The notes: generated by a model from the letters alone, not told the origin. A stretch of DNA of 59,523 nt from Hydrolagus colliei (GCA_035084275.1 JAYJKW010000187.1:1-59523); one strand, 5' to 3'. Positions 4,555-49,674 are shown, numbered from the stretch's first letter. A program made the numbers and translations.

Positions 4555-4583
4555 TCACATCTTAATCGCTGCGTAAGTCACAT
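4555..4583 (-). CDS. Gene 1 last coding exon: DVTYAAIKM-stop, canonical ITIM VTYAAI
   Basis: Acceptor catgtttttccag|AT GTG ACT TAC GCA GCG ATT AAG ATG TGA. Confidence 0.82.
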
Positions 4584-4856
4584 CTGGAAAAACATGATAT
4601 AACGTGTCGGTCAGGGCGGAGGACAACACACTCACTGACACGCTCGCGCACACTGTGAAACACTCACTGTATCACAGTGACACACACACACACACACTCA
4701 CTGACACATTGATTGACACACACACACATTCACATTTGGACCTCCTGTAGCCCAGTGGTTAGAGCACTCGCCTTGCAAGCGTGAGACCTAAATCCAGGCA
4801 GAAACCTTGGGCAAGTTTCTTTACTACACACACACACCCACACACACCCACACCCC

Positions 4857-4890
<34 letters not shown>

Positions 4891-7800: not shown

Positions 7801-10800
7801 CTCCCTTGCCCATATCCTCCCCACCCTCTCCCCTCCCCCATGTCCCCCAGCTCCTCCCCTCTCCCCTGCCCAAGTCCTCCCGCACCCTGTCCCTCTCCCC
7901 TGCCCATGTCCCCCACACCATCTCCCTTGCCCATATCCTCCCCACCCTCTCCCCTCCCCCATTGCCCCCCCCAGCCCCTCCACTCTCCCCTGCCCATGTC
8001 ATCCCGCACCCTGTCCCTCTCCCCTGCCCATGTCCCCGCCATCTCCCCTCTCCCCTGCCCATGTCCCCCCCACCCTGCCCCTCTCCTCTGCCTGTATCCC
8101 CCCCACCCTCTCCCCTCTCCCCTGCACATGTCCCCCCCAGCCCCTCCACTCTCCCCTGCTCATGTCCCCCCCCCCTCTCCCTTCTCCCTTGTCTATGTCC
8201 CCCCCCTCTCCACTCTTCCCTGCCCATGTCCCCCCCCCCACTCTCCCCTCTCCCCTGCCCATGTCTCCCCCAGGCCCTCACCTCTCCCCTGTTTGTGCTG
8301 GAACAGGATTGTGGCGTACTGACAGGAATCACTGCTGGTCACTCGGTCGCCTCTCGTGTCTGTTTAGCCACAAATGATGTTTGATATTGTGATTATCCGC
8401 GTTATCAACAACAATAACATCAATCGATTGTTTATAATAAGAATACTTCTTAATCAGTCTATTCGGTGTGCGAGTGTGAGTGCATGTGGGGTGTTAGGGT
8501 CAGTGTGTGTGTGTAAGGGTCAGTGTGTGTGTGTGTAAGGGTCAGTGTGTGTGTGTGTAAGGGTCTGTGTGTGTGGTGTGTAAGAGTTAATCATTGTGTG
8601 TTGNNNNNNNNNNNNNNNNNNNNNNNNNNNNNNNNNNNNNNNNNNNNNNNNNNNNNNNNNNNNNNNNNNNNNNNNNNNNNNNNNNNNNNNNNNNNNNNNN
8701 NNNNNNNNNNNNNNNNNNNNNNNNNNNNNNNNNNNNNNNNNNNNNNNNNNNNNNNNNNNNNNNNNNNNNNNNNNNNNNNNNNNNNNNNNNNNNNNNNNNN
8801 NNNNNNNNNNNNNNNNNNNNNNNNNNNNNNNNNNNNNNNNNNNNNNNNNNNNNNNNNCCCCTGATTGCTATGTTGGCGTAGTCTCCGTTGTCGGAATCTG
8901 AAACAGAAGAGTGTCCGTCACACGTGACACCTCAGCCAGTGGGCAGTGGGCTACCCCTCTCTTCCCCCCACAGATCAGAATCCTCTTGTAGATTCACTAG
9001 ATTGGTTCCTGGGATGAGGGGGTTGAGCTATGAGGAGAGGTTGAGTAATCTAGGCCTATATTCTCTAGAATATAGAAGAATTAGAGGTGATCTTATAGAA
9101 ACCTATCAGATTATTAAGGGCCATGACAGAGTAGCCAGTGGGAGACTGTGTCCCCTGGTTGGAGAAACTATAACTAGGGGGTCACAGTGTTAAGATTAGG
9201 GGTCAGCCTTTTCACACTGAGTTGAGGAAAAACGTCTTCACTCAGAGGGCAGTGAATGGATGGAATTCTCTACCCCAAAAGGCTGTAGATGCTCAGTCAG
9301 TCCTTGACCATATTCAAGACTGAGATTGACAGATTTCTTGTGGATAAAGGGATTAAGGGATATGGGGATAAGGGGGGGCAGGTGGGGTTAGATTAGAAGA
9401 TCAGCCATGATCTTATTGAATGGAGGGGCAGGCTTGAGGGGCTGAATGGCCTACTCCTGCTCCTAATTCCTATGTTCTGATGTATTTACTTTTCTGGAGC
9501 TCACCCCCTTGAACCCCTCCACAACCCCACAAGCCAGACTCTGTGTCTTGGAATGGAATGAGCTCACTCTCTCTCCCTGGAGGGACACATTCTGGAAAGA
9601 ATTAGGCGCAAGTTGGCGAGAACCAAGTCTTGGGAGGGAGGGGTGGGGGGATGAGGTGAGGGGAGCCCAGAGTGTGTGTTGGGTTAACTGCTGGAGTCCA
9701 ACCAACTAAACCCAAACAATAGCTTGGCCTTTCACAGCCCTTTCCTGCTGCTTAACCAGTCAGGAACACTCCCCCCTCAGGGCTTTGGTTTGTAGGGTTA
9801 ACAAGGAGCTGGATGGGATGACTCCCTGCCCCCAGTGACTGACTGGTCTGCTGTTGAGGCGGTGGAAAGGGTGAGGAAACCGGATTAAAGGATCTGCCCT
9901 TGTTTAATAACTAACGGAGGGGATGAAATGGTCTCCTCGGCCTGTGGAGAAATAGTACCTGACATCATGTCCATCGTGTCCAGTCTTGTCGACGTAGAAA
10001 CCACATCCCTAATAAAAGAGAAAGAGTTTTCAGAGTTACGTCACGTACTGACCAGGCCCCAAGCCTGAAATCCTTGGCCACCAATCCCCAGGTCAGTCAG
10101 GGCCTACAATCCTCTAATCCACTATCTGCAATGTTAACTCAAGCATCACCCACCCCCCCCACCACCATTGCCCCACCCCGCCCTGGGAGTGAGTTACAGG
10201 CTGGAATCTACATCAGCAAAAACAACAATAACAACAAAATGACACTTGTATAGATAGAGCCTTTCGTGTCAGGAGGCCGTCCCAAGGCGCTGGACATTCA
10301 CTGTGCCAGACCCGAGCTGGGGACAGGGGGAGGAGGGAAGGGGGTGGTATTAGGAGTTGCCAATGGGTCCATCGAAGAGGAGAGTCTTGAGGCTGGACTT
10401 GAAGGAGGCCAGGGAGGGGGCGAGGGGGAGGGACTGTGGGTTGGAGTTCGAGAGGTTGGGGGCAGAGTGGCTGAAGCCAATGGTGGGGAGGGTGAGTGGG
10501 GGGACGTGGAGCAGGCCAGAGCCTGCCGAGCGGAGGGAGGGTGGGGGGGGAACAGGTTGGTAAGGGGATAGGAGATCACTGATTTGGGGGGGGGGGGGGG
10601 GCAAGGTTGTGGAGGCTTTAAATGTGAGGACCAGGATGTTGAATTGGATCCTCTGGATGATGGGGAGCCAATGGAGTCGGGCGAGGATGGGGGAGATGGG
10701 GTTTGGAACAGTAGAGGACACCGGCCACAGAGTTGTGGATTATCTGCAGCCTGTGGGGGGAGGGATTGGGAAGGCCGACCAGCATTACAAGTATAGAGCG

Positions 10801-13800
10801 CCTTTCACATTGGGAGGACGTCCCAAGGAACCATACCATATCATGGGTAGAGAATAATACACACTCACTCACTCCCCCAGGAATAAGTTTGTGTGTGTGT
10901 GTGCGTGTTGGGGTGAGGTGGGGGTGACTGCAGACAGGCAGTGAGTTTGACGTTGACTATGAACAGAGAAAGCGATGTGGGGAGAAGGTGGAGCCGAATT
11001 CTAGAAGAAAACTGTTGGGATGGAATAATAATAATAATAATCCTTGCATTCCATACAGGGCCTTATCACGTCTTCTCGACGACTCAAAGTGCTTCTCAGG
11101 ATTATAGAGTAAAGTGACTGTATATTTGTGGGTGAAACGCGGCAGCCAATTGCTCACAGCAGCGTCCCCCACAAACAGCTGTGGACTGAGTGACCAAATT
11201 ATTATCGGGATTGTTTTTCTTGAGGGATTATTATCAGGTCAAAGCGTCACAGGAGTCCTGACGGTGTCCTCAGGGGCAAAGTCTAAATTAGAAACTCGCT
11301 CTCTGAATAAACTATCGCCCTGTGTGCGCACACAGACACACACACACATACACACACACATGTATACACACACAAACACACGTACACATACACACATACT
11401 TCCTCTGCCCAAACCTTTAGTTACAATGCCCTAACCCCCTCCGCATATGCCTCACTAACCACCTCCCCACATCTCCCCTCCCCTCCCCCTGGACAGTTAC
11501 TGCCGCAGAATATACGGTAAAGTGAATTGACTGTATACTTGCGTGCGAAAAGCTAGAGCGGGAAACGGAGAGGGGAATTTATTTTTATTTTTGAGTTAAT
11601 TACTGTTTTCAAATTGGGAGTGAAGGGGGAACTTCTTCTCACACAGGAAGTGAGAATGTGGAACTCGCTGCCGGAAACTGATTGAAGCCAAGCCTCAACA
11701 ACAACAACAAAACTAAATTCTATGTGTATAGAGACTTTCACGTCGGGAGGACGTCCCAAGGAGCTGGAGAGTTAGTGTTTCGGACCCGAGCTGGGGTCGG
11801 GGACGGGGAGGGCGGAGGGAAGGGAGGGGAAGTGGCGGTCAAAGAGGAGGATCTTGAGGTGGGACTTGGAGGAGACCAGAGAGAAGTCAACCACAACCAT
11901 CAACAGATTGAAGAGGAACCTTGATTTGAAGCGGAATAGACAGGTGTGGGAGAGGGGAAGATGGTGTGTGAGTGAATGTGAGAGTGGGACTGTGTATGAG
12001 TGAGTATATGTGAATGTGTATGTGTGAGATTGTGCATGTATATCTCTGAATCACTCTCTGGGTGTCAGTCTCTGTGTGTCACTGTGTGGCTGAGGTTGGG
12101 ATTGAACCATATCCAGGCAGTCTCTGACCTGTGTGGAGGACTGGATGACGGTAGTCTCTGTGGTTGCCCTGAAGAGATACAAGGAGCAGAGTGAGGGAGT
12201 GTGTAGATCAGTCACTGCCTGTCCCTGGCCAGGCGCTCAGCCCCCGAACCCAGTTTATGAGATAATAATAACAATACTGTAACAATATTAGCTTCATTTG
12301 ATATGCTTAGTGGTTAGAGCACTCGCCTCGTGAGTGAGAGACCTGGGTTCAATTCCAGGCAGGTCAGGGACAAACCTTGGGCAAGTTTCCTTACTCCACA
12401 TGCTTTATAACAACCCTTAAAAAAATAATAAGACTAGTTATTTCAACCCACGGCTGTTTGTGGGGACGCTGCTGTGCGCAATTGGCTGCCACGTTTCGCC
12501 CACAAAATATACAGTCACTTCACTTGACAGTATATTCTGAGAAGCGCTTTGAGACACAGTCTAGAAGACGTGAAACGCGCGATATCAAATGCAAAGATTA
12601 TTAACAGTCACTACACTGAACAGCAACCAGCCTGTGTCAATCCCTGCTGTAATGGAGCAGTGTCGCTGTTTCGAGACTTCAGCAAAGTCTTTGACAATGG
12701 GGCGCTCTCTCTGTCTCTGTCTCTGCCTCTGCCTCTGCCTCTGCCTCTGTCTCTGCCTCTCCCCAGCGCTTTTCTGGACTGTCAGCCTGGTCTTTAAGCT
12801 CTGAGCAACATCGCACTCGAACTCACAAAATCCTGACTCAGAGGTTCACCCAGCGAGTTGTTGGAATCTGGCATGCGTTGCCTGAGAAGGTGGTGGAGGC
12901 CGATTCGATAAGAGTTTCTAAAAGAGAGGCAGAGGTTGACTCGGCGAGGACGGGTTTGCGCGGTTATAGAGAGAGACACGGGGAACGGGATTAAATTGCT
13001 CTTTTCAAAGAGCCGGCACAGACTCGATGGGCCGAATGGCCTCCTTTTGTGCCGTAAGATTCTATGATCCTGTGAGAGGCGAAAGTGTGAGAGACTGAGC
13101 CAGCCAGAGTGACGCACACCAAATCGATCACTGTTACCACTATTGCTCACCCACCTTTTTTCTTGCAGCACACGATGAGGATGGTGACGAGGAGGACAAG
13201 AAGACACATTGACACGGCAATGGCCACGGGGAAGACGTAACCTGAGGGATCAGACACAAGTTGATCAAGAGTTTCGTGCACGCCATCATTCTCTGTGCTG
13301 GTGCTCACTCCTCCGCTGGAGCTCTCTACTCTAACCGCAGTGTGCGGCTCAGTGGTTAGAGCGCTCGCCTCACAAGCCAGAGACCTGGGTTTGATCCCTG
13401 CCGGGGCAAAACCTTCGGGCAAGTTTCCTTGACAATCCCTCCCAAAATAAGCAATAATAAATCAGTCATTTCAACCCACGGCTGTTTATGGGCTGAAATA
13501 ATATTCATTATGATCAATAATAATCATCATTCCATTAGATTTAGTGCTTTTCACGTCGTCTACACGTCTGAAAGCGCTTCACAGAACATACTGTATATTT
13601 GTGGGTGAAATGGGGCAGCCAATAAGCACAGCAGCGTCCCCCACAAACAGCTGTGCATTGAAATTACCAATTATATTATTGCGTTTTTTTTGATGCATGA
13701 CAATCAGGCATGTGTGTGGAGTGAGGAAACCTGACCAAGGTGTCGTCCCTGCCGGGAATTGAACCTGGGTCTCTTACTTGTAAGGCGCATACTCTAACCA

Positions 13801-16800
13801 CTGAGCTGCAGGACTCCACAAATGTTACATGTCCCACATCCTGTCCATTCCACCATTGGCAGTCCAACCTGGAATTCCATCATGATTCATCTCGATGAGC
13901 ATCACAGATACTCCCACCGTCCCTATCACCTCACCCTCTCACTTGTGTCCTGCAAGACCCATCTCAAGACCTTCCTCTGTGTCTGCACCTCCACTCATCC
14001 CCCCCTCCCTAACCCTTCGACCTCCTCCCCTCTTGACTCCAGCCCCCAGCTCGGATGCAAACTCTTCACTGTCCAATGCATTGGGACGTCCTCCTGACGT
14101 GAAAGGCGCTGTGTAAATGTGACTTGTTGTTGTTGCTGTTGTTTGGGGTCAGGGATGTGTCAGCGAGGGCTCTTACCTGGAACGCTGATCTCAACCTGGA
14201 GTCTGATCTCCCTCTGGATCACCACGAGATCCTTGTTCTCCCGGTCAGCCTCCACTAGACACAGGTAGGTGCCATTGTCCTCTATTACCAGGCTGCTCAC
14301 TGTCAGTGCGATGTTCCCATCAGCCATGCTCCCCCTCAGCTCAAATCGCCCTTTACCCTCCTTCCTAACCCAGGAACCAGCCTCCGGTCTGAAGGTCACC
14401 AGCCGGCTGTAAGGCTCCTTCATCACCCAGATGACATTGCCAGGTTTATACCCTTTGGCATCAGGGGGCAGTGGGCAAGGCAACATCACCGATTCTCCCA
14501 CCGTCCCCATCACCAGACGCTTGTTTGTGTCACCACCTCAGAGAAGAAACACACACAGTCACATACACACAGCCACACACACACACACACAACTCACAAA
14601 GCTATACACAATACACACACTCACATACACATTTATATAGACAGACAGACATACACACACGCATATACAGACACACAGACACGCATACACAGACATACAG
14701 ACACGCTTACATACACATACAAAAACACATACAGACACACACTTACAACATAGAGGCACACACAAAGAATATACACACACAACAACAAAGTTACATTGAT
14801 ATAGCAGCTTTTACTTCGGGCGGATGTCCCAAGGCGCTGGACAGTCAGTGTTTTGGATACAGGCACACACCCAAATGCACAAATCCAAACACACATACGG
14901 ACACACATACAACATACCGAGAAAAATACACAGACTAATAATAATAATATAATCCTTGCATTTGATATAGCGCTTTGTACATCTTATCAACGTCTCAAAG
15001 CGCTTCACAGAATATACTGTAAAGTGAATTGACTTTATATTTGTGGGTGAAACTCGAATTGCGCACAGCAGCATCTTCACAAACAGTCGTGCATTGAAAT
15101 GACCAACTATAATATTGTGTTTTTTTGACGGATGACAATCAGGCATGTGTGTGGAGTAAGGAAACCTGCCCAAGGTGTCGTCCCTGCCGGGAATTGAACC
15201 TGGGTCTCTTACTTGTAAGGCACATACTCTAACCACTGAGCAACAGGACTCCACAAATGTCACATGTCCCACATCCTGTCCATTCTAACATTGGCAGTCC
15301 AACCTGGAATTCCATCCTGATACATCTCAATGAGCATCACAGATACTCCCACCGTCCCTATCACCTCACCCTCTCACTTGTGTCCTGCAAGACCCATCTC
15401 AAGACTTTGGGGACTGACCTATGAGGATAGGTTGAATAAACTAGGGCTGTATTCTCTAGAGTACAGAAGAATTAGGGGGGGATCTTATTGAAAAATATAA
15501 GATTCTTAAAGGGCTGGATAAAGTAGGCACTGAGGGACTGTTTCCCCTGGGAGGAGAATCTATAACCAGGGGTCACCATCTTGAAATGAAGGGTCAGCCT
15601 TTTAGAACAGAGTTGAGGAAACATTTCTTCACTCAGAGGGCAGTGAATTTATGGAATTCACTCCCCCAGAAGGCTGTAGATGTTCAAGGTTGAACATTTT
15701 CAAGGTTGAGACTCACAGATCTTTAGAGAGATTAGGGGATATGGGGATAGGGCAGGTAATCAGAGTTAGGTGAGAAGATCAGCCATGATCTTATTGAATG
15801 GCGGAGCAGGCTGGAAGGGTCGAATGGCCTACTCCTGCTCCTAATTCTTATCTTCTTATGTTCTTCCTCTGTGTCTGCACCTCCACTCATCCCCCCATCC
15901 CCAACCCCTCGACCTCCTCCCCTCTTGACTCCAGCCCCCAGCTCGGATGCAAACTCTTCACTGTCCAATGCATTTGGACGTCCTCCTGACGTGAAAGGCG
16001 CTGTGTAAATGTGACTTGTTGTTGTTGCTGTTGTTTGGGGTCAGGGATGTGTCAGCGAGGGCTCTTACCTGGAACGCTGATCTCAACCTGGAGTCTGATC
16101 TCCCTCTGGATCACCACAAGATCCTTGTTCTCCCGCTCAGCCTCCACTAGACACAGGTAGGTGCCATTGTCCTCTATTACCAGGCTGCTCACTGTCAGTG
16201 CGATGTTCCCATCAGCCATGCTCCCCCTCAGCTCATATCGCCCTTTACCCTCCTTCCTAACCCAGGAACCAGCCTCCGGTCTGAAGGTCACCAGCCGGCT
16301 GTAAGGCTCCTTCATCACCCAGATGACATTGCCAGGTTTATACCCTTTGACATCAGGGGGCAGTGGGCAAGGCAACATCACCGATTCTCCCACCGTCCCC
16401 ATCACCAGACGCTTGTTTGTGTCACCACCTCAGAGAAGAAACACACACAGTCACATACACACAGCCACACACACACACACACAACTCACAAAGCTATACA
16501 CAATACACACACTCACATACACATTTATATAGACAGACAGACATACACACACGCATATACAGACACACAGACACGCATACACAGACATACAGACACGCTT
16601 ACATACACATACAAAAACACATACAGACACACACTTACAACATAGAGGCACACACAAAGAATATACACACACAACAACAAAGTTACATTGATATAGCAGC
16701 TTTTACGTCGGGAGGATGTCCCAAGGCGCTGGACAGTCAGTGTTTTGGATACAGGCACACACCCAAATACACAAATCCAAACACACATACGGACACACAT

Positions 16801-32099: not shown

Positions 32100-32390
32100 T
32101 CATAGATTCATATAATTTTACGGCACAAAAGGAGGCCATTCGGCCCATCTAGTCTGTGCCGGCTCTTTGAAAAGAGCAATTCAATCCCACTTCCCTGCCC
32201 GCTCCCCATAGCCTAATAGACCTGTTCTCCCTAAATAAAGATCTAATTCCCTTTTAAACGTTGTTATCGAATCAGCCTCCACCACCTTTTCAGGCAATGC
32301 ATTCCAGATTCCAACAACTCGCTGAGTGAAAAAATTTCTCCTCAGCTCCCCTCTACTTCGCCTTGAAACTATTTTAAATCTGTGACCACA
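32100..32390 (-). mobile_element. CR1 3' fragment
   Basis: ORF 32181..32501 GHRFKIVSRRSRGELRRNFFTQRVV; tail at left. Confidence 0.8.
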
Positions 32391-35300: not shown

Positions 35301-38300
35301 AGAGCCCTGGGGGACGCTACAGGTGATAGTACGGGGGCTGGAAGAGAAACTGTTGGTGGTGACAAAGTGTAGGCGATGAGAGAGTTAGGAGCCGAACCAG
35401 GGCAGGGCAGAACTTCCAGCCCACAAGCTTCCCTATCAGCCTGTCTGTCCCTCCGCTCAGCAGGCTCTGCATCCACCATCCCAGCATCGGGGGCCGGGCT
35501 TTCAGCCTCTCTGCTCCCACACTGTGGAACTCCATCCCACAATCCCTTCACCTCACTTCCTCTCTTTCCTCCTTCAAGGCCGGTCTCAAGACCTTCCTCT
35601 TCGACCGCGCGTTCTGCTCCCCTCCTAACTCTTCCCCCTCTCCTACTCTCCTTTCCCTTCCCCCTACCCCGACCTTTCCCCCCCTGCTTGGGTTCCGACC
35701 CGATTGTTCAGCGCCTTGGGATGTCCTCCCGACATGAAAGGTACTCTATAAATGCAATTTTGTTGTAGTTGTTCTCACAGTCTTCAAGGCACAGAAACAA
35801 TAAAGGATATGTATCTTGTCTGACGCAAGGTGGAAGATCAGAAGAAGCTGGTCAGCTTTTCATGGACATTACCTCTACTGCTGAAAGAACGCAACACAAA
35901 CAGGATTGTATTTGTATTTAATTCACAAAACGCATGGAGATTCACTCAATCCTTTAATTCAAACTTTACAAGTCACCCTCTTCCAAACCAATCTTTTCCA
36001 AACTCTCCTGGCAAACTATATAAAATGGTTCTGGGAAGTTACTGTTTTATACTAGCATCATCCGTATTCACTAAGGTCATTCATGCAATAAGCAACATCT
36101 CAACATCTTCCTTTTCATTTTTATTTTCTTTTTTCAATCTTGTTCTATTATTTTATTTCAAATTATATCAATGCACTTTACAGTATGTTCTATGAAGCGC
36201 TATCAAATGCCTAGAAGATGTGAAAAGCACTATCTCAAATGCAAGCATTATTATTATTATTTGTGGTCTTTTTGCTTCTCTTCCGCTTCTGGTTTTTCTC
36301 ACAGTTTCTGCTTTTCCTTTTCCTCTTGTTTTTATTGTTCTTTGTTTGATCTCCCATGACGTTCGTCTGTATTGCCTTTTTCATCTTTTTACCTAATAGG
36401 ATCTGGGGTTCTTATCTTTCCCCCCAATTTTTCCTTTGATCCCACCTTCCGTTTTTAGATTTCTCCTCCAAATCTTTTTTGAAAGTTTTTTTTCTTCAGT
36501 GGCTGTTGTCCTTGTTTCTCCAAATTTCTTTCCCATTTCTACGTAACTTTCCCATTTTTATTGTGCCTTCCAATCCTAATAAAGTATCAGCTTTTATTTT
36601 TATTCTACTTTGTCTCCCTGTCCACTTTCTCCATTTTTTCTTTATTTGGATTTCCCAATTTGATATATTCTTCCCATGCCATTACACTGGCCTGTGTTAC
36701 TGCATCTAATTTGCACTGAATTAAGTTCCTTCCTTCTATACACCATAAAGATACCATCCATTCATTTTTCTCTTCCACTGCTTCAATTTTGTACTCATCA
36801 TTGTGCTTTTCAATCCTTATTGACTCTCGTAGACAGTTTCCCTCCAGGTTCCATTTTCACTTCTACACCACGTAATGTTATTGAATCCACAAAACGCAAA
36901 GTAGATTCACTCAGTCCTTTAATTCAAACTTTACAAGTCAACCTCTTTCAAATCAACCTCTTTCAAACCCTCTTTCAAATCCGCAAGTCGCTCTTTCCAG
37001 AATCCTTTTATACTTGCATCATCCATATTCAATTGTCACGTACGTCATCAAGCAATATGCAACGAGGATGCTGGGCTATATTCTTAAAATGATTTTAGAT
37101 ACCCAAATGTCATACAAAGGATATAGAGTCAACTAATATCCAGAGTATTGCAATAGTAACCCTGGGAGGCACTCTGAAACGCCGTCCAGCATGGAGAGCA
37201 CTATATAAATCCAAGTTGTTGTTGGCTCTCTGTGGGAAATCGTAACCCTGACTGTGTGTGTGGGCAATAGTAACTGTGCTGCTTTTGAAGCGACTGAATA
37301 AAATACTTTATGAAAGTGCCATTCAATCCTCTGGGTTAATGTGTTTGCAAACAGCAGCCACAAAATGACATTTGTATAGTGCCTTTCACGACGAGATGAC
37401 GTCCCAAGGCCCGGACAGTCAGTGCTTTGGACACGAGTTAGCGCGGGATCGGGCAGGGCAGGGTGGGGCGGCGGGAGGTGGGGAAGGAGGAGGTTGATCG
37501 AAGGCATAGTTGAAGAAAAGGGTGCTGAAATACGCCAACAAAGTATACAGTCAATTCGCTTTATAGCATACAAAACACAACATTTCAGACTTTTCAGACT
37601 TACAGTCACTAGTGCAAGTTTGAAAGAAATTACTAATAACATTCCTTGTATTTGATATAGTGCTATTCATGTCTACTCACGTCAAAGCGCTTCACAGAGT
37701 ATACTGTAAAGTGATTTGACTGTGTATATTTGTGGGCAAACCCCCATCCTCCTTCATTGCCTCTCCTCTCAGCTCAATATTCATGGACCTGCCCTTGCCT
37801 GCTTCGACTTTTACGTTTCTCACTGTCTCCATTTTGTCACCACCAATGGCTTCTCCTCCAGCCCCCACACTGTCGGCTGTGGTGTCCCCCAGGGCTCTGT
37901 CCTTGGCCACTATTCTCAATATCTACATGCTCCCCTTTGGGGATATCATCCACAGATATCGGGTCAACTTCCACATCTACGCGGATGACACCCAACTCTA
38001 TCTTTCTGCTCCTACCATCGATTCCAGGACCACTGCTGTCCTGGGAGACTGCCTGGATGAGAGCTAACTTTCTACAGTTTAATGTTAAGAAGATCAAGGG
38101 CCTCCCGATTGGCTTGCTCCAGCACTTTCACTCATCAGGCACTGGCAGCATCAACCTCCATGGTTGCACTCCACCTCACCAAGCCAGTCAGGAACCTAAA
38201 AGTTATTTTAAAACGTACCATATTAATAATAGACTAAACAATAACAGAATATTGTATGGATATGCACAAATAAAGCATTCCAGCACACTCGGTAAAATGA

Positions 38301-41300
38301 TCGGTAAAAAAGCATTCCAGGGTTCGGTAAGCAGGAACGGCGCAAGGGTATTTGGCGCCCTAGGCGAGTCTTCAGATGTGAGGCCCCACATCTCCTGCCC
38401 TCTACCACATCTTTGTGCAAAAAGTGAGTGTCCTGGATGGATACGGTATGAGATCCGGTTGCTGGAATAGTGAATTGTATTGGGAAATACCGGTTGCTGG
38501 AGCGAAAGGCTTTTAATGACTAACAGAGAGGGGGAATCAGGGCAAGGAAGAGAAAAGAGAAAGTGGGGTAGGCAGCAGGAGATGATGGGTTAAAGAAGTG
38601 TTAATGTTGTGAAACAAAAGGGGAAATTGCAACAAAACTGGAGAGAAGAGGTGCTAATAACAGCCTCCTCCATAGACGGCAGAACTCTGCAGTCCTTGTT
38701 GTCCACCACTCCAAGCTCCATGATCCCATCTGCCCCATTCTCGTCTGACTCCATTGGCTCCCCATCACTCAACAGATTGAATCCAAGATCCTGGTCCTCA
38801 CCTTCAAAACCCTCCAGAGCCTTGCCCCACCCTACCTCTATGACCTTCTAACACCCTCCCAGCCTGCCCGCTCCCTCCACTCAGCAGGCTCCGGCCTACT
38901 CCTTGTCCCCTGACCCACTTGCCCCACCATCGGCGGGTGTGCCTTCAGCCACTCTGCCCTTAACCTCTGGAATTCCATCCCACAGTCCCTCCACCTTGTA
39001 CCCTCTCTGGCCTGCTTCAAGTCCCGCATCATACCCTCCTCTTCGATGGTCCCATCAGTCACTTCCTTTCCCTCCACCCTCCCTGACCCCGACCCCAGCT
39101 TGTGTCTGCAACATTGACTGTCCGGCAGCTTGGGACGTCCACTCGGTGTGAAAGTCGCTATTCAAGTGTAATCTTGTTGTTGTTGTTGTAAATAGTAGAG
39201 TAAGGAAACTTGCCTAAAGGGAATCAAACCCTGGTCCTCTCACTTGTCAAGTGTCCTAACCACTATGCTATAGGGTCCCCCCCATTATGTTTACATAGCC
39301 GTAATTCCTGTGAGAAGAGGGGTGTCACGTAATGTGTGGAGGTTCTTCAAGGAGATGGGTTGAGTGGAGGCTGTGTAATTTTTGTGTATTAGAGGTGGTG
39401 CCCCGACTGACAGCAGCGGTCACTGGGACAGGCTCCACAGCCACAGTTGGTTTTCTCTGGGACACAGAAAGTTATGTTGGGGTTTGGGGGGATGGTCTTG
39501 GAATTGAAACATCTGAGCAGAAGACATTGTAGCATCACAAGATGTCAGTACTTCCTGCAGCTGAATGACAAGAGGAAGCAGTAATGTTTATCAGTTGACC
39601 ACAATGTGGAAGTTTCAAAAGCTTTTGAGTAAATATACTGCCCCTCCCCTCGTGGATCCTCCCCTCAATACATCCCAACATTACCAGGCGAGCTTTCATC
39701 CTCTCTGCCTCTATCCTCCGGAAATCTCTTTCCAAATGCCCACAACAAATAACAACAACTCAATGACAATTGTATAGCACCTTTCATGTCAGGAGGACGT
39801 CCCAAGGCGCTGGACAGTCAATGTTTCAGATCTGAGCTGGTGTCGGGAATGGGGAGGGTGGTGGGAAAGTGGGGGATTTGAGATGACCAATGAGACTGTG
39901 GAAGAGGAGGGTCTAGAGATGGAACTTGAAGGAGGCTAGGGAGGGGGTGAGATGGAAAAGGGAATGTGGGATGGAATTCCAGAGGTTATGGACAGAGAGG
40001 CTGTAGGCTTGCCCACCGATGGTGGGTTGGGTGGGTCAGGGGGCTTGGAGCATGCCGGAGCCTACTGGGTGGAGGGGGCAGGAGTGTCGTTAGGTGGTTA
40101 AGAAGTTACAGAGGTAGGGGCGAGGTCATGGATTGCTTTGAATGCGTGGACTAGGATCTTGAATTGAATCCTCCAGGCAATGGTGAGGAGCTAATGGAGT
40201 CAAGTGAGAATTGGGGAGTTGGGGACCCAAAGTTTAGAGTGGTGGAGGACATGGGCTGCAGAGTTCTGGATTGATTATCTGCAACCTGTGGAGGGATGAA
40301 TTGGGAAAGCCTACAAGCGGGGTGATGCTGTAGTCGAGCCTGGATATGATGAATAATTGAATGAGGGTTTCAGTGGCCTGAGGGGTGAGGTGGTAGTGGA
40401 GTCGGGCAATATTGCAGTGGTGAAGGAAGGCAGTGTGGATCATGGCTTGGATGTGGGGGAGGAAAGTCAGTTGAGGATCAAACAAAACACCAAGGTTCTT
40501 GACTGGCTTGGTGAGGTGGAGTGTGAAACCTTAGAGGTTGATGCTGCCAGTGCCTGTGAAGCACTGACTGAGTGAGCCAGTCAGAAGGGTGTCTGTCTTG
40601 TTGACATTCAACTGTAGAAAGTTAGCTCTCATCCAGCACTTCATGTCTCACAGACAATCTGTCAGGACAGCAGTGGTCCTGGAATTGAGGGAAGCGGCAG
40701 AAAGATAGAGTCGGGTGTCGTCCGCGTACATGTGGTAGTCGACCCCATGTTTGCGGATGATATCCCCAAAGGGTAACATGTAGATGTTGAAAAGTAGGGG
40801 TCAAGGAGAGAGCCAATCGGGGATGCCACAAGTGACAGTGTGGGGGTTGGAGGAGAAGACATTGGGGGCAGCAAAGTGGAGATGGTGATTAGGTAGGAGT
40901 CAAACCAGGTGAGGACTAGTCCATGAAGATTGAGCTGGGAGGAGAGGCAGTGTAGGAGGATGGAGTGATTGACATCCATATCTCCTCACTCTCCGTGAGG
41001 TGGAAGGATTTGGGAATAGACAACATTCCTGTCAACCTCCCAGCTGAGACTCTCACCCAGTCCGTTGTGGAGTACATTGAGATGCTGTCTCTGTGTGACA
41101 TGCACATGGAAACAGAGCTGGCTGGTGACTGCTCTCAGGATAGACTGGATAGGTTGGGCATTTATTCCCCAGAGACGAGAGGTTTAAAAGGGGAACCAAA
41201 TAAATCAATAGTTTGAAATCATAAAATAATTCAATAACTAATTATTAGCATAATTCTGAATAGGCTGTTGTCACTGGTTGGGGAACTTTAAACAAGGGAC

Positions 41301-41639
41301 ACAAGCATAAGATTGCGGATGATTCACAGTTCCAGTCAAATCCATTGGCTTGGATGGAAGCCGGGTTTGAAGAACTATCCACAACTCAGTGCTATCTTCG
41401 CTTTGACAGTAAGGTTGTCTCTCAGGCAACCTTATGATGAGAGTTGGACTTTGGCAGTGACACAGAACAAGGGCTGAGGGAACAACTTCTTCACCGTGGT
41501 TTTAAACCCACACACCACTCGCTGGCCGGCTGGCCGGCTGGCTGGGTGATGTATCAGCAGCTGTGATCAGAAAAAGATATAATATTCTTCAGCGCAGTGT
41601 GATCATGGCTGTGAGTGGCTCTCATTGAGGAGGGAATGA

Positions 41640-41723
41640 AGAACTTCCTATTTCTTAATGTGGAGAGAAAGAGGAAGACATTTTCAGTTGAGCGTTGGGA
41701 GACACTCTCGTTAGTCACCGACG
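41640..41723 (+). promoter_or_regulatory. Putative proximal promoter/5' UTR with ETS (GGAA) motifs; mirror at 25706-25790
   Basis: acttcct at 41643 and aaagaggaag near 41668-41677 just upstream of the ATG; no obvious TATA box. Confidence 0.3.
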
Positions 41724-41784
41724 ATGCTGCCTCTCTGTGTTTGGTTTGCCAGCTTCCTCCTGTGGGGCACAGCACAGGCCTATG
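41724..41784 (+). CDS. Gene 2 exon 1: signal peptide
   Basis: ATG CTG CCT CTC ... GCC TAT G|gtatgt; identical to gene 1 exon 1. Confidence 0.85.
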
Positions 41785-44700
41785 GTATGTACTCCCTCCC
41801 CATTGTTACACTACTGTGGTCTCTGAGCGAGCGGTCAGTGAGGGGCAGGCGTTCTGGAAGATGGGATCAAGCAATGCCTCCTCGGGGGTTGGGGTGAAAG
41901 GGCTTTGAGATGTCACAATGATGTGTTGAGGCGTTATATCAAATGCAATGATTATTAATTATGTATTATAGCTGGTTCCCAGGTGACGCTTAACAAGGGA
42001 GCTCACCCTCTGTGACAATCTCTAAGCCGATTCCTGAGCCAGCCAAGTCCACACTCCTCCACTGCACTGCTGATGACAGCCCAGCCCAGCCTGGCTCATG
42101 GGCAGGACCTGGAAGGGCAGAACGGTCAGTGTGAGCAGGGAGTCAAACCACTGAGTTCCTGTTAACCCGACAAGCCAGAGCCCTAATGGTCAGGGTGATC
42201 CTAGCTTGACAATTAGAAAGCTTGAAAGTTAGAGGTCAATGGCAAGCTGCGTGGTTTTAGATGGTTTTAGATTCCAGCGGTTACCCCCAAAGCTCTGGGG
42301 TCACCAAGCATTGGGGTCCCCAAACTGTGCCTCATACTCTCCAGAATTCAGTAAAATAGGATCCTCCAGGGAGAGACTGCGGATTCCACTTCATAAGAAC
42401 ATAAGAATTAGGAGCAGGAGTAGGCCATTCAGTCCTGCGTGCCCGCTCTGCCTTTCAATAAGATCATGGCTGATCTTCTCACCTAACTCTGATTACCTGC
42501 CCTATGCCCATATCCCCTAATCCCTCTATTTTTAAAAAATCTGTCTGTCTCAGCCTTGAAAATGTTCAAGGACTGAGCATCTACAGCCTTCTGGGTTAGT
42601 GAATTCCATAAATTCACTACCCTCTGAGTGAAGAAATGTTTCCTCAACTCTGTTCTAAAAGGCTGACCCTTAATTTTAAGACTGTGACCCCTGGTTATAG
42701 ATTCTCCTACCAGGGGAAACAGTTCCTCAGTGCCTACTTTATCTAGCCCTTGAAGAATCTTATATGTTTCAATAAGATCCCCCCTAATTCTTCTGTACTT
42801 GAGGCTAGAGAATACAGCCCTAGTTTATTCAACCTATCCTCATAGGTCAGTCCACTCATCCCAGGAACTAACCTAGTGAATCTACGCTGCCCCCCCTCTA
42901 AGGCAAGTATGTCCTTCATTAAATAAGGAGACAAAACTGCACACAATACTCTCGGTGCGGTCTCACCAGAGCCCTATATAGTTGCAGCAAGACTTGCCTA
43001 CTCTTATACTCTAAACCTTTTGAAATGAACGCTAGCATGCCGTTCCCCTTCTTAGTTGCTTGCTGCACCTGCAAACTAACTGTTTGGGACTGGTGTACAA
43101 GGACACCCAAATCCCTTTGAATACTAACACTATCTAACTTCTCCCCCTCTAGAAAATAATCTATTCTTTTATTCTTGCTACCTAGGTGAATAATTTCACA
43201 CTTGCTAACATTGAATTCCATCTGCCACCTACTTGCCCACTCCCGTAACCTATCTATATCTTGTTGCAATCTTTTTGCATCATCCTCAGAGCTCACTCAC
43301 CTACCTAGTTTTGTGTCATCCACGAATTTAGACACATTATATTCAATGTCCTCGTCCAGATCATTGATGTAAATAGTAAATAGCTGAGGCCCAAGCACTG
43401 ATCCTTGTGGCTCACCACTAGTTACATCTTGCCAATTTGAGAATGATCCGTTCATCGCTACTCTCTGTTTCTACTCGATAGCCACTCTTCTATCCATGTT
43501 AATATTTTCCCATTAATCCCATTGGCCTTAATCTTGAGTAACAGCCTTTTGTGTGGCACCTTGTCAAATGCCTTCCTAAAATCCAAATATACCACATCTA
43601 CTGGTTCCCCCTTATCCAACCTGCTGGATACATCCTCAAAAAATTCTAAAAGATTAGTCAAGCATGACTTCCCTTTTGTAAAGCCATGTTGACTCTGCCT
43701 AATCTTTTTATGGTCTTCAAGGTATCCCATAACTACGTCTTTTATTAAGGACTCAAGAATTTTCCCTACAACTGGTGTCAGACTAACTGGTCTATAGTTT
43801 CCCATATTTTCTCTCCCACCCTTCTTAAATAGTGGAGTTACGTTTGCAATCTTCCAATCAATGGGGACTTTTCCAGTATCCACAGAATTTTGGAAGATTA
43901 TAGACATTCAAACATCGGGAAGTTTCATACTTATACAGCACTTCATACTTCTACTTATAAGAATTCTCATACTTATACAGCACAGAAGGAAGCCATTTGG
44001 CCATCGTGTCTATGCCGGCTCTTTGGAAAGAGCTGTCCAAATCAATCCCACTCCCTGCTCTCTCTCTCTCTCTCTCCTCATAGCCCTGGAAACCTGTCCT
44101 CCCCAAATATCCATCTACTTCTCCCTTGTTCTTTCCTTGTTCACCCTACATGTGACAGCTCCCTCTGCCCTCCTCCAGCCTGTAACTCACTCCCTGTGGG
44201 TGAGGGATTTATTCTCGATTTAAACCCCTGAACCCCTTGGATTAGTTTCCACCAGACTGGCTGCCCTCCTGTCTCTGCGGGAATCTGTGAGTTTATACAA
44301 ACGGCAGCATATGAGACATTGCCTGACTTTAATGCAGTGAACGTTTGTGTTTCTGTATGTGTGGGGGACATGTTTCTGCATGGGTCTCTGTATGTTTTTG
44401 TGTGTTGGGCGTCTGTGTATGTTTGTTTGTGTGTGTCTTGGGTGTCTGTATATGTTTGTTTGTGTGTTGCATGTCTGTCTCTGTATATGTTGGTGTCTGT
44501 ATATTTGTTTGCTTTGGGTGTCTGCGTATCTGCGTGTATGTTTGCATGTGTTGTGTGTCTATATCACTCAATGTCTCAGTACCTTGGCACGTCCTCCTGA
44601 CGCGAGAGGTGCTATACACCTGTACTTTTGTTGTTGTTGTTGTTGTATGTGTCTTGTGTGTCTGTGTACGTTTATGTCAATGTTGCCTGTCTGGTATGTT

Positions 44701-47700
44701 TGTGTGTTGGGAGTCTGCATCTCTATGTTTTTGAATGTTAAGTGTCTATGTCTCTGTGTGTTTGTGTGTCGGTTGTGTGTCTGTTATTGTGTGTTGGGTG
44801 TGTGTTTGCATGTATGGGATGTCTGTGTATGTTTGCGTGTATAGTGTGTGTTTCTGTATATTGTGTGTATATATTTGTGTATTGGGTGCCTGTGTCTCTG
44901 TGTTTGTGTGTGTTGGGTGTGTCTCTGTGTTTGTGTGTGTTGGGTGTGTCTCTGTGTTTGTGTGTGTTGGGTGTGTCTGTGTTTGTGTGTGTTGGGTGTG
45001 TCTCTGTGTTTGTGTGTGTTGGGTGTGTCTCTGTGTTTGTGTGTGTTGGGTGTGTCTCTGTGTTTGTGTGTGTTGGGTATGTCTCTGTGTTTGTGTGTGT
45101 TGGGTGTGTCTCTGTGTTTGTGTGTGTTGGGTGTGTCTCTGTGTTTGTGTGTGTTGGGTGTGTCTCTGTGTTTGTGTTTGTTGGGTGTGTCTCTGTGTCT
45201 GCGTGTGTTGGGTGTGTCTCTGTGTATATTGTGTGTATATATTTGTGTATTGGGTGTGTGTGTCTCTTTGTATGTCTGTGTGTGTAGTATTTCAATGTGT
45301 CTCTGCCCACACAGTATTCCAGAGGAACGGTTGGACAATGCTCGGCCCAGACGAAGTGAAGACTGAGATCGGGACGTCAGCCATCGTGTCCTGCTGGTTC
45401 TCCCACCCAAATCCCAATGACAGAGGTGACATCACGATCAAGTGGACGATCAATAACAATAAAGTCATCAGGTTTGAGTGCCGCTGGAACAGCCCAGCTC
45501 AGAGCAAGGCCGGCAAGTGTGAGACAATGGAACCGAAGCCCGGGGACGAGCGATACCGGCTGCTGGGGGACCCCTGGCATAACGACGTCACACTGATGAT
45601 AGACTCTGTGATCAGTCAGGACCAGGGGAGGTATATGTACCGAGTGGAGATTAACATCAAAGGGCAAAATTTTAATTCCCTCCACACCCAGCTGTCAGTA
45701 ACAGGTGAGACCATTGTGTCTGTGCTTCTCTATGACACAACAATCCATTCACTAACCTCCCCCTCCCCCCCCGCCCACTCCCCAATGCCCTACAATTGGC
45801 TTCTCTTCAGATATTTACCCAATTCCCTCCTGAAACCTCACCTGGATCCTGCCTCAATCCCTGCTCCCGGCCGGCGTTTCACAAACAATCGGAGAATCTT
45901 ACAGCACAGAAGGAGGCCATTCAGCCCATGATGTCTGTCTCACCCTGTTGAAAGAGCAATAACTAGTCCCTCCACTGTTACCCCAACTAGTCCCAAACCC
46001 CACTCTTAGCCCCAATTAGTCCCATTTCCCCCATTATTACCCCAACTAGTCCCACACCCCCCCCCCTTGTTATCCCAAATAGTCCTCACTCACCCTGCTC
46101 TTACCCCATATCCACATTTTTCCTTTTTAAGTCCCTATCCAATTCCCTATTAAAAGCTATTATTGAATCGGTTTCCACCCTTTCAGGCAGTGCATTCCAG
46201 ACTGTAATAACTCTCAGGGTAAAATCAATTCTCCTCATCTCCCCTCTGGTTATTTTGCCAATCACCTTAAATCTGTATCCTCTGATTTCTGACCCACTCG
46301 TCAGAGGAAAGAGTTTCTCTCTATTCGCTCGATCATAACTGCTCATCATTTTGAGCATCTGTATTAAATTATTATTATTATCAGTACCTTGGGACGTCCT
46401 CCCGACGTGAAAGGCGCTCTATAAATGTAATTTGTTGTTGTTGTTGTTAATCATTCTTGCATGGCTTTGCGTGATTGGCTGCCGCATTTCGCCCACAAAA
46501 TATACAGTCAATTCACTTTACAGTATATTACATGAAGCACTTTGAGACATCTCAAAGGCCTGATCTGATACTGTATCAAATGCAAGGATGATTTGATGTA
46601 GAGTTTTGAAGGCCTCTCAAAGCATTTCATGGAATATTCTGTGAAGTGAATTGACACCAGCTGAGGCCCAACCAGAGATTACTAAAGACTCAATATAACT
46701 TCTTTGCTTTTATGCTCTAAGCCTCTATTTATAGAGGTGACCATAAACACAGTCGAAGAGGAACGTCTTGAGGCATGATCTGAAAATGGGGAAGGATGGG
46801 GCCAGGTGGAGAGATTGAGGGAGAGAGAACAGGAGTTTATATATATATAATAATATAATAATCCTTGCATTTGATATAGCGCTTTTCACATCTTATCGAT
46901 TTCCCAAAGCGCTTCACAGAATATACTGTAAAGTGAAGTCACTGTATATATTTGTGGGTGAATCGTGGCAACCAATTGCGCACAGTAGTGTCCCCTACAA
47001 ACAGTCGTGGTTTGAAATGACCAATTTTATTGTTGTGGTTTTTTGGGGGGAGGCATTATTATTAGGCGTGTGGAGTAACGAAACTTGCCCAAGGTTTTGC
47101 CCTGACCTGCCTGGATTCGAACACAGGTCTCTCCAGCTTAGTCTCCCCAGCTTGCAAGACAAGTGCTCTAACCACTGAGCCACAGGAGTTTGGGGGAAAG
47201 TTTGACATTGTTATTCAAGTGACCTCTATACAGTTGAACTGTGTGTCCAGGCCACACCAGGGTACATTCAGCGGGGACCGGCCTGCTTCCTCCCCACCCT
47301 CTACTCTCCACCTTCGACAGTCAGCTTTCAGCCATTCAGCCCCCGCTCTATGGAAGTCCGTCCCAGATTCCCTCCGTCTCAAGCCCATCTCAAAATACAC
47401 ATCTTCGCCTGCTCTGAACGTCATTTTTCCCTCTACCTCTAATTAAGGTGCCCAGACACCAATGTCAACACTGTAAGTCTTAAGACATCCCCCCCCACAC
47501 CCTCCCCCTATCCTGAAAGGTGCTGGATAAATGTAAACTGTATTAAAACAGCTGCTGAGAAAGTAACAATGATGACTGTCTATCTGTCTGCCTGTCTGTG
47601 TATGTCTCTGTATATTGTATGTGAGTCTCTCTGTGTCTGGTATAGACACACATTGTCTATTTGTGTGAGTGTGTGTATTGTGTATAGCTGTGTGAGTTGT

Positions 47701-49674
47701 GTGTGTGTGTGTGTGTGTGTGGCTGTGTGTGAGTATGTGACTGTGTGTGTTTCTTCTCTGAGGTGGTGACACAAACAAGCGTCTGGTGATGGGGACGGTG
47801 GGAGAATCGGTGATGTTGCCTTGCCCACTGCCCCCTGATGTCAAAGGGTATAAACCTGACAATGTCACGTGGGTGATGAAGGAGCCTTACAGCCGGCTGG
47901 CGACCTTCAGACTGGAGGCTGGTTCCTGGGTTAGGAAGGAGGGTAAAGGGCGATATGAGCTGAGGGGGAGCATGGCTGATGGGAACATCGCACTGACAGT
48001 GAGCTGTCTGGTAATAGAGGACAATGGCACCTACCTGTGTCTAGTGGAGGCTGAGTGGGCGAAGAAACGCGTGGTGATCCAGAGGGAGATCAGACTCCAG
48101 GTTGAGATCAGCGTTCCAGGTAAGAGCCCTCGCTGACACATCCCTGACACATTGGACAGTGAAGAGTTTGCATCCGAGCTGGGGGCTGGAGTCAAGAGGG
48201 GAGGAGGACGAGGGGTTGGCGATGGGGGGATGAGTGGAGATGCAGACACAGAGGAAGGTCTTGAGATGGGTCTTGCAGGACACAAGTGAGAGGGTGAGGT
48301 GATAGGGATGGTGAGAGTATCTGTGATGCTCATTGAGATGTATTGGGATGGAATTCCAGAGATTGGGAGCTGTCCAGGTATGAGCCCTTTGTCCGCATCC
48401 TTGGATTTTGGTTATCAACCATAACCATATAACATCACACTAGCCTTGCACCTTGGGGAGAGAGCAGGGAATGGGCTTAGAATAGAGAGCTCCAATGGGG
48501 GAGTGAGCACCAGTACAGACACCATGGGGAGAGAGAGAGAGAGAGAGCAGGGAATGGGGTTAGAGTAGAGAGCTCCAGTGAGACAGTGAGCACCAGTACA
48601 GACACTATGGGGAGAGAGAGAGAGACCGAGAGCGGGGAATAGGGTTAGAGTAGAGAGCATCAGTGGGGGAGTGAGCACCAGTACAGACACTATGGGGAGA
48701 GCGCATTGAATGGATTATAGAGTTCCAGTGGGGGAGCGAGCACCAGCACAGAGGAAAATTTCTTGGTTAGAATAACTCTTCTTTCTTTATCGCCGAAGCT
48801 CTGGCCAACATTGGGCTGTGGCTGATGCCTGCAGCCAAATGTCTCGTTCTGTTGGTGATGGGGATCATTATCGCCTGTAACTCAAGAGGTTTGTCAATTC
48901 TTTGCTGTTTATATTTGAAATATAAAACCACTGGAGCTAATGGGCTTTTACTATAAACAAGATGTGTAACCTATCTTACCTGGGGAGAGAACTCAAAAAT
49001 ATCGCAGAGGAAAGTCACAACACTATTCATATCACCAGCGTGGTTACCAACCTGCTGTAAAATTATAGAGACCCTTATTGAGGATAAAATCACAGAGCAC
49101 TTGGATGGAAATATAATGAGAAAGGATAGCCGATATGGATTCATGAAGGGAAGGTCCTGCCAACCTAATTTACTGATTTTGTTTGGAAGCGTGGAAAAGA
49201 ACAAACCACTTTCATTTGTCTCGATGGCTTGATAAGAGGCTCCATCAAACGCAAGAATTATTATTATGATAAATTCTAAACAGGGACAGGGAAAGAGATG
49301 ATTGAAAGTGCGGTCAGAGAAGAAGGTTGAGAGATGGACCCGGAAGGAGATGAGAGAAGAGGAAAGCTGAAGGGGTTCCAGAGTACAGTCCAGAGAGTGG
49401 GGGAAGGTACGCTGAAAACTTCCCCAACTGGATTTTAAGGGTTTACCACATATCTGCGCTATCTTAGGTTTCAAGACAAAACGACTCCCAGACTGAGACT
49501 AGGTGGAATTTAGGATCTCTGTTGAGCTATTATCCCATATAGAACATGGGACCCAGTGTCTTCAAGTCATCGTGTTTGATTGGCTGCAAATTGATCCTAT
49601 TCTCATTGGAATATGGCCAGTAAACGTTTTTTCCTTTCTCCCAAGATCGTAGAAGATCAACAGAGCGTCAGTGA
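41724..49674 (+). CDS. Gene 2: predicted activating Ig-superfamily receptor (SP - Siglec-15-like V - V-set - TM with Lys - short basic tail), 308 aa, 5 coding exons
   Basis: Exons 41724-41784, 45315-45704, 47763-48119, 48799-48888, 49646-49674, all joined in phase 1, total 927 nt, open. Confidence 0.82.
42394..43910 (-). mobile_element. 5'-truncated CR1-type LINE in gene 2 intron 1
   Basis: ORFs 43458..43907 ([38 protein letters not shown]) and 42919..43296; cttatgttctta tail at left end. Confidence 0.9.
44850..45240. repeat. TG-rich ~26 bp minisatellite (gttgggtgtgtctctgtgtttgtgtgt) before the V exon; mirror at 23470-23760 with fewer units
   Basis: Tandem units seen directly; unit number differs between arms. 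Confidence 0.85.
45315..45704 (+). CDS. Gene 2 exon 2: Siglec-15-like V-set domain
   Basis: 390 nt phase 1-1 exon; 13 nt differences from gene 1 exon 2; [11 protein letters not shown]. Confidence 0.9.
47763..48119 (+). CDS. Gene 2 exon 3: V-set domain (A type)
   Basis: 357 nt phase 1-1 exon; ORF 47786..48136; extra Cys (SCLV instead of SSLV). Confidence 0.9.
48460..48753 (+). repeat. ~60-70 bp tandem repeat (gttagagtagagagctccagtgggggagtgagcaccagtacagac) upstream of gene 2 TM exon
   Basis: About five units; a single homologous unit lies on the minus strand at 13291-13335. Confidence 0.8.
48799..48888 (+). CDS. Gene 2 exon 4: TM with central lysine [30 protein letters not shown]
   Basis: Acceptor tctttctttatcgccgaag|, donor GAG|gtttgt, 90 nt phase 1-1; hydrophobic stretch interrupted by a single Lys. 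Confidence 0.78.

Follow-up and report, generated by a model that had tools for sequence, protein, structure and literature searches.

The best-known paired receptors with ligand-binding halves matched by gene conversion come from the primate Siglecs, KIR, and LILR. Among the Siglecs, the lysine in the membrane span of Siglec-15 couples the receptor to DAP12 and DAP10. The skate MDIRs, as Cannon et al. reportedly set out in 2006, carry CD300/pIgR/TREM-like domains in variable number. They make up a multigene family of the immunoglobulin superfamily (IgSF) with activating and inhibitory members that is known in cartilaginous fish (PMC3031540). SIGLEC11 and SIGLEC16 lie head to head at a distance of about 9 kb; gene conversion there takes in the first exons as well as the region upstream of them, and constraint is relaxed (PMC5701461). 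Here, we analyzed a stretch of 59,523 nucleotides from the cartilaginous fish Hydrolagus colliei (GCA_035084275.1, JAYJKW010000187.1:1-59523; hereafter the window, with coordinates counted from its first letter). It contains two divergently transcribed genes, gene 1 on the minus strand and gene 2 on the plus strand. Our analysis indicates that these are likely two real, adjacent type I membrane receptor genes forming an activating/inhibitory pair, recently homogenized, within a cartilaginous-fish family in which a Siglec-15-type V-set domain is combined with a CD300/pIgR-type V-set domain.

Two divergent genes with a matched 5' half

Gene 2 comprises five exons, all with AG/GT splice sites and all in phase 1. 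Its spliced product of 308 amino acids, with a lysine-containing transmembrane (TM) segment and a short tail, has exactly the length given in the initial annotation of the locus. The signal peptide exon (41724..41784, plus strand; splice sites, phase 1) is followed by an exon for a Siglec-15-type V-set domain, V1 (45315..45704; Pfam V-set, PDB, and AlphaFold2 [AF2] with Foldseek), and by one for a second V-set domain of the CD300/pIgR/TIM type, V2 (47763..48119; Pfam, PDB, and Foldseek). The TM exon (48799..48888) is backed by homologous TM segments. The last exon (49646..49674), defined by its splice sites, encodes DRRRSTERQ and a stop codon, leaving a cytoplasmic tail of 9 residues.

Gene 1 was modeled with nine exons on the minus strand, all in phase 1 with canonical splice sites. 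These are a signal peptide exon (25645..25705; ATG to GT donor, phase 1), a V1 exon (23006..23395; homology to the gene 2 exon), four V2 exons (copy a, 19403..19759; copy b, 17961..18320; copy c, 16069..16428; copy d, 14177..14536), a TM exon for the uncharged segment GYVFPVAIAVSMCLLVLLVTILIVCCKKK (13155..13241), and two tail exons. The TM exon matched the Callorhinchus inhibitory TM region weakly. The first tail exon (8282..8359; AG/GT, phase 1) encodes DTRGDRVTSSDSCQYATILFQHKQGR, with the membrane-proximal tyrosine motif DSCQYATI; the second (4555..4583), identified by its homologous terminal motif, encodes DVTYAAIKM and a stop codon. Self-comparison placed the V2 copies in tandem units of 1.9 kb that are 94 to 98.6% identical, with one V2 exon apiece (13971..19870, minus strand).

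The two genes are tied together by an inverted duplication of 9.5 kb (19164-28588 versus 48359-38811), which self-BLAST and a repeat search detected as blocks with 90 to 99% identity. Global alignment of the two arms gave 269 mismatches in 7,843 aligned columns, an identity of 96.6%, and this likeness is beyond chance. Arm A (19164..28588, minus strand) contains the upstream region and the signal, V1, and first V2 exons of gene 1, and arm B (38811..48359, plus strand) contains the upstream region and the signal, V1, and V2 exons of gene 2. Between the genes, the signal exons are 100% identical over 121 bp including flanks, and the V1 exons are 96.9% identical, with 13 nucleotide differences. 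The near-identical ectodomain exons and the shared signal exon of the initial annotation were thereby borne out. The duplicated tract begins 2.9 kb upstream of the start codon and extends approximately 240 bp beyond the V2 exon, short of the TM exons. The start codons lie 16 kb apart, with divergent transcription, and self-comparison delimited a spacer of 10.2 kb between the arms (28589..38810), in which a search for family immunoglobulin (Ig) exons found none.

An assembly artifact, in which a collapsed repeat or the two haplotypes had mistakenly been arranged as an inverted pair, would account for the high arm identity, and the copy number of the 1.9-kb V2 units is the type of feature that assemblers misjudge. 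Nonetheless, the arms diverge by 3.4%, and each carries dispersed-repeat insertions of its own (arm B at 42.4-44.0 kb, about 1.6 kb; arm A at 20.5-21.5 kb, about 1.0 kb). Moreover, they are separated by 10 kb of unique sequence, their boundaries are all gap-free, and the 3' ends into which they run differ, both being conserved independently in other species. We consider such an artifact highly improbable.

The sole run of N in the window (8604..8857) lies in intron 7 of gene 1, between the TM exon and the DSCQYATI exon. It is 245 bp from the nearest exon edge, touches no exon, and is crossed by no reading frame; it could conceal an exon, and the join across it is not verifiable from the window alone. 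Shark homologues have one further exon between the TM segment and the first tyrosine motif, and a tblastn search of the readable sequence between 13155 and 8359 with family tails revealed no counterpart of a further cytoplasmic exon. The two tail exons (8359-8282 and 4583-4555) might be foreign to gene 1, either through a wrong scaffold join at the gap or as the end of another family gene; the position of the gap and a tail shorter than in the shark homologues would fit this. We regard it as quite unlikely, since the strand, order, and phase (1-1-1) of these exons agree with gene 1 and with the exon order of the homologues, and the window holds no further family 5' exons, whether between or past them. 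The 78-nt exon aligns to shark TGGKRFT..DSCTYASIVFDSNRKG with an E value of about 0.01 (tblastn, 9-kb target), and DVTYAAI is matched exactly.

The gene 1 model described above yields 693 amino acids. Use of a longer TM exon (acceptor at 13325) yields 721; the 737 amino acids initially given could not be reproduced. The longer exon was down-weighted for its poor acceptor and its homology to an 83-bp tandem repeat of gene 2 intron 3. This repeat (2.9 copies, 48458-48701) is homologous to 13270-13325, just 5' of the gene 1 TM exon, reads in frame as ESSxGGVSTST, and could be a SINE (short interspersed nuclear element)-derived element or an optional stalk exon. Where the DSCQYATI exon ends (8282), its donor site marks the start of a minisatellite with 29 copies of a C-rich 34-bp unit (7360-8291); the assembly gap lies on the opposite side of that exon. 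The last intron of gene 1 holds a reverse transcriptase fragment (5774-6124, minus strand; Pfam RVT_1, E value 9e-9).

Further duplications surround the pair. Self-comparison revealed a third copy, 94% identical, of the distal upstream segment 38499-40202/27198-28588 at 51072..52783 (plus strand). A third gene downstream of gene 2, which this copy suggested, was ruled out, as no Ig exon follows 51072-52783 within the window. Self-comparison also revealed a relic copy (33956..34234, plus strand; 95%) of most of the gene 2 last exon with its 3' flank; it has lost the splice acceptor and reads ..RSPERQ followed by a stop codon. These segments belong to a colinear direct duplication (33956-34234, 37223-37580, and 38499-40202 versus 49650-49926, 50597-50945, and 51072-52783), in which the right-hand part of the spacer and the distal upstream region of gene 2 recur from the gene 2 last exon onward. 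This arrangement hints that activating genes formerly stood in a tandem array and that one of them has largely been overwritten. A 27-bp TG-rich minisatellite stands just upstream of the V1 exon in both arms (23485-23742, 9.5 copies; 44749-45225, 17.4 copies), and many SINE-like copies with tRNA-related 'PGIEPRSLA..SALT' frames are dispersed over the window.

A cartilaginous-fish receptor family with two signaling ends

Our first homology search returned one Heptranchias protein and one Callorhinchus fragment. A profile search then recovered 70 relatives, with E values down to 1e-296, from eleven shark genera, five ray and skate genera, and Callorhinchus. All of them are Chondrichthyes, in keeping with the cartilaginous-fish setting read from the sequence at the outset. 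The window proteins share 70% identity with the Callorhinchus V2 fragment, versus 30 to 39% with elasmobranch proteins, a pattern that, with a TM segment most similar to the Callorhinchus one, points most probably to a holocephalan (chimaera).

The relatives fall into two signaling classes. Inhibitory members, of about 380 to 430 amino acids, have an uncharged TM segment, RKKGG, and a tail with DSCTYA[SE]I and a terminal V[TI]YAAV, while activating members, of about 290 to 340 amino acids, have the TM motif IPLG[VL]KxLxLLVM and a short basic tail. A 411-amino-acid product from the Heptranchias cluster combines an uncharged TM segment with a tail bearing DSCTYADI, DFCTYANL, and NVTYAAV, to which DSCQYATI and DVTYAAI of gene 1 align. 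The terminal motif N/DVTYAAV/I recurs in more than 15 homologues, and DSCxYAxI is conserved family-wide. CQYATI is a noncanonical immunoreceptor tyrosine-based inhibitory motif (ITIM), with cysteine at position -2, and VTYAAI is a canonical one. As for gene 2, its TM segment is identical to that of Callorhinchus LOC103174418 at 16 of 24 residues (E value 3e-6), and its K, L, V, and M are invariant among 16 activating-class sequences. Because homologues carry the same two end types, we accept both 3' ends in the window as real. With open phase 1 frames and AG/GT sites throughout, the reading of two intact head-to-head genes with opposite signaling modules, including an uncharged TM segment with CQYATI and VTYAAI in gene 1, is thus upheld.

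In functional terms, the mid-membrane lysine and 9-residue tail of gene 2 would direct signaling through an acidic-residue adaptor bearing an ITAM (immunoreceptor tyrosine-based activation motif), of the DAP12, DAP10, or FcRgamma kind. The uncharged TM segment of gene 1, together with DSCxYAxI and the terminal ITIM VTYAAI, would recruit an SH2 phosphatase. With such similar ectodomains, the pair would see nearly one ligand yet give opposite signals.

The exon plan is common to the family as well: in the window, the signal, V1, repeatable V2, and TM segments each occupy phase 1 exons, and a skate locus (L001) has the same signal/V1/V2/TM layout. V2 repetition, as in gene 1, is also found in a Heptranchias protein with V1 and three V2 domains (P0004). 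Leucoraja erinacea CM054009.1 has four family genes with the window's exon structure in mixed orientation over 0.6 Mb (12.10-12.71 Mb; L001-L004), three of them activating and one inhibitory. No tight head-to-head pair occurs among them, and the inhibitory and activating genes are 0.5 Mb apart.

An exhaustive profile search further uncovered a sister subfamily with an additional C2/I-set domain, arranged V1-V2-C2-TM. Its Callorhinchus members LOC103174418 (P0120; 414 amino acids, lysine in the TM segment) and LOC103188797 (P0231; 738 amino acids, three tandem V1 domains, ITIM tail) fall into one 90%-identity cluster and make up a second homogenized activating/inhibitory pair. The C2 domain of this subfamily matched domain 2 of Siglec-15 in the PDB weakly and unspecifically (E value 0.012), and a search with the C-terminal region of P0120 gave matches confined to cartilaginous fish, which leaves orthology to the tetrapod Siglec-15 C2-TM module putative. 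The window pair is not an isolated invention: both end types are conserved over sharks, rays, skates, and chimaeras in a multigene family, with a further pair in Callorhinchus.

Literature searches on Siglec-15 or Siglecs in sharks, cartilaginous fish, and Callorhinchus, and on DAP12 in elephant shark, yielded no description of this receptor family, but homologues have already been machine-annotated at NCBI, under names that include Siglec-15, Siglec-10/12, pIgR-like, JAML-like, HAVCR1-like, and uncharacterized. The architecture claimed for the pair was recovered in the form of neighboring genes with near-identical ectodomains, one with a charged TM segment and short tail and the other with ITIMs. 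The window locus is a clear further case of paired receptors, from a family that is large, publicly annotated under misleading names, and apparently unstudied.

A Siglec-15-type head on a CD300/pIgR-type domain

V1 of gene 2 is a Pfam V-set domain whose best PDB match is human Siglec-15 (E value 3.9e-10), followed by CD33 and Siglec-7/8. With the family profile, Siglec-15 was matched in the PDB at an E value of 5e-24, and the match ended at the end of V1. The AF2 model of the window V1 exon reached a predicted local distance difference test (pLDDT) score of 83, and Foldseek placed Siglec-15 (7ZOZ) on top for this model with a template modeling score of 0.80, ahead of Siglec-7, CD33, and sialoadhesin.

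In Siglec-15, R143 is the essential sialic acid contact, through a salt bridge; the core disulfide is C64-C142 (B-F), and C95-C104 (C'-C'') is a feature unique to Siglec-15 (PMC10264397). The Arg143 equivalent is kept in both window genes, where human YFCRVE is aligned to YIYRVE in gene 1 and to YMYRVE in gene 2. Also kept are the equivalents of C95 and C104 (Cys76 and Cys89 in the gene 2 protein), which do not vary among 16 family members, and that of C64. By analogy with Siglec-15, the ligand is probably a sialylated glycan, bound via the retained arginine. Among family proteins P0014-P0069, 7 of 15 activating versus 1 of 19 inhibitory members have His, Tyr, Cys, or Gly in place of the R143-equivalent arginine (Fisher P = 0.011 without correction for shared ancestry; four or more separate changes).

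V2 is likewise a V-set domain (Pfam E value 8e-13), with TIM-2, pIgR D4, CD4 D1, and CD300 as best PDB matches. By fold, Foldseek ranked CD300A/IRp60 best and also retrieved TIM-1/2/3. A C2 exon was sought in the window by tblastn and none was found, so the V-set-then-C2-set order that defines Siglecs is absent. The label 'Siglec-15-like' thus fits domain 1, in sequence, fold, arginine, and cysteine pair, but not domain 2, which is a CD300/pIgR/TIM-type V-set rather than a Siglec C2 domain. Sequence and fold models together portray the predicted protein as a Siglec-15-type head on a CD300/pIgR-type stalk domain, not a canonical V-plus-C2 Siglec.

Probable homogenization of the pair and comparison with known systems

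To place the window pair among its relatives, we built a tree from their signal, V1, and V2 sequences. The two window genes were sisters with 100% support, on a long branch outside the elasmobranchs, and shared 95% amino acid identity over these domains. Activating and inhibitory labels required 13 changes on the tree versus a mean of 13.2 after shuffling, with members of the two classes interleaved by taxon. Since ectodomains cluster by taxon and signaling ends by class, activating and inhibitory genes seem to have been homogenized repeatedly. The signaling ends, common to chimaeras, sharks, and rays, are old, and the ectodomain halves appear to have been exchanged again and again; the recent homogenization and the tight head-to-head layout are local to this locus. 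In the window, identity between the arms did not differ between exons (97.4%) and non-exon sequence (96.5%; P = 0.19). An identity of 96.6% that extends to introns as to exons points to a recent inverted duplication or gene conversion that overwrote one ligand-binding half. Either event would have replaced the 5' half of one gene (upstream region, signal, V1, and V2) with that of the other.

A neutral birth-and-death process was weighed against this reading. In that scenario, one recent inverted segmental duplication set the 5' half of one member beside the 3' half of another; conversion is not ongoing, selection does not favor a matched pair, and one copy is perhaps heading for loss. It would suit the like identity of introns and exons, a ratio of nonsynonymous to synonymous substitution rates (dN/dS) that is not below 1, the other duplication relics around the locus (33956-34234 and 51072-52783), and the distance of 0.5 Mb, without head-to-head layout, between the inhibitory and activating genes of Leucoraja. 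However, taxon-grouped ectodomains with both end types recur in Heterodontus, Scyliorhinus, skates, and the second Callorhinchus subfamily, which is hard to explain without repeated homogenization. Furthermore, divergence is strongly heterogeneous along the tract, with a patchy mismatch density of 3 to 28 per 300 columns (chi-square P = 3e-9), and the tract ends just before the TM exons. We hold the neutral process to be a possible explanation, though an unlikely one.

Several points nevertheless weigh against a functional, conversion-matched pair. A single recent duplication with old 3' ends retained is not formally separable from repeated conversion. Between the V1 exons, there are 11.5 nonsynonymous and 1.5 synonymous differences (dN 0.039, dS 0.018), and the V2 ratio is near 1; dN/dS is thus about 1 to 2 on very few changes, too few for a test, no purifying constraint is shown, and the pattern fits relaxation as well as selection. 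The F-strand cysteine equivalent to C142, which Siglec-15 and all elasmobranch relatives keep (YxCRVE), is tyrosine in both window V1 domains, and this may weaken the fold. As described above, the gene 1 tail lies beyond the assembly gap and is short. Finally, expression and splicing are predicted for both genes, and adaptor pairing, phosphatase recruitment, and sialic acid binding are all functions that we infer. The tyrosine codons at the C142 position are located at approximately 45629-45631 in gene 2 and 23081-23079 in gene 1, leaving the B-strand cysteine without its usual partner.

One or both genes might accordingly be nonfunctional, that is, unexpressed or misfolding, despite their open frames. 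The cysteine-to-tyrosine change in both V1 domains and the dN/dS of about 1 to 2 would agree with this, and neither window protein was found as an annotated product in the protein collection searched. On the other hand, the 14 exons contain no stop or frameshift, all splice sites are canonical, the arginine, the Cys95/104 pair, the TM lysine, and the ITIM are all kept, and the AF2 model of V1 is confident. On this balance, loss of function appears improbable, and we continue to favor a recently homogenized activating/inhibitory receptor pair.

A broader evolutionary scenario can be offered only tentatively, as we deem it rather unlikely. The Siglec-15 lineage would have started as a conversion-matched, multigene paired system that survives in cartilaginous fish and that bony vertebrates cut to a single activating Siglec-15; the window genes would then still be undergoing conversion, under pressure from pathogens that exploit host sialoglycans or mimic them. 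The more frequent replacement of the arginine in activating than in inhibitory members is a possible trace of such pathogen-driven pairing.

The oldest living lineage of jawed vertebrates thus provides, at this locus, an unusually clean case of conserved signaling ends joined to a recently swapped ligand-binding half. Siglec-15-type domains here have inhibitory partners, without a mammalian counterpart, which bears on the origin of the Siglec family and of DAP12-type signaling, and the family offers an entry point to the innate immune receptors of sharks and chimaeras.

Compared with Siglec-15 itself (human Q6ZMC9, PDB 7ZOZ), the window genes share the N-terminal V-set domain, as the best match in both sequence and fold, with the Arg143 equivalent and the Cys95-Cys104 pair, and gene 2 also has the membrane-span lysine and short tail. 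They differ in a second domain of the CD300/pIgR-type V-set rather than the C2-set and in the tyrosine at the Cys142 position. The chondrichthyan family, moreover, is multigene, with ITIM-bearing inhibitory and multidomain members that are absent from Siglec-15, and its orthology to bony-vertebrate Siglec-15 is putative. The CD300/pIgR/TIM receptors resemble the window proteins in domain 2, which matches CD300A, TIM-1/2/3, and pIgR D4 in sequence and fold; as far as described, an N-terminal domain of the Siglec type is absent from these receptors and from the skate MDIRs. In a check by name, none of the proteins among the family matches and skate clusters was called an MDIR.

The closest relatives in layout are two other pairs. 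Like the window genes, Callorhinchus milii LOC103174418 and LOC103188797 form a cartilaginous-fish activating/inhibitory pair with ectodomains more than 90% identical, a closely similar activating TM segment, and repeated N-terminal domains in the inhibitory partner. They belong, however, to the sister subfamily, in which a further C2/I-set domain precedes the membrane; their V1 is about 31 to 34% identical to that of the window, and their inhibitory gene repeats V1, whereas gene 1 repeats V2. SIGLEC11/SIGLEC16 (and SIGLEC5/14) likewise combine an inhibitory with an activating gene, placed head to head about 9 to 10 kb apart; their homogenized tract covers the first exons (the V-set exon among them) together with the sequence upstream, stops short of the TM exon, and shows relaxed constraint in its converted exons. 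These mammalian genes differ in belonging to the CD33-related V-plus-C2 Ig family of another vertebrate class; the window tract, at 9.5 kb, has introns as similar as its exons. It is plausible that the Hydrolagus pair arose independently of the mammalian CD33-related pairs.

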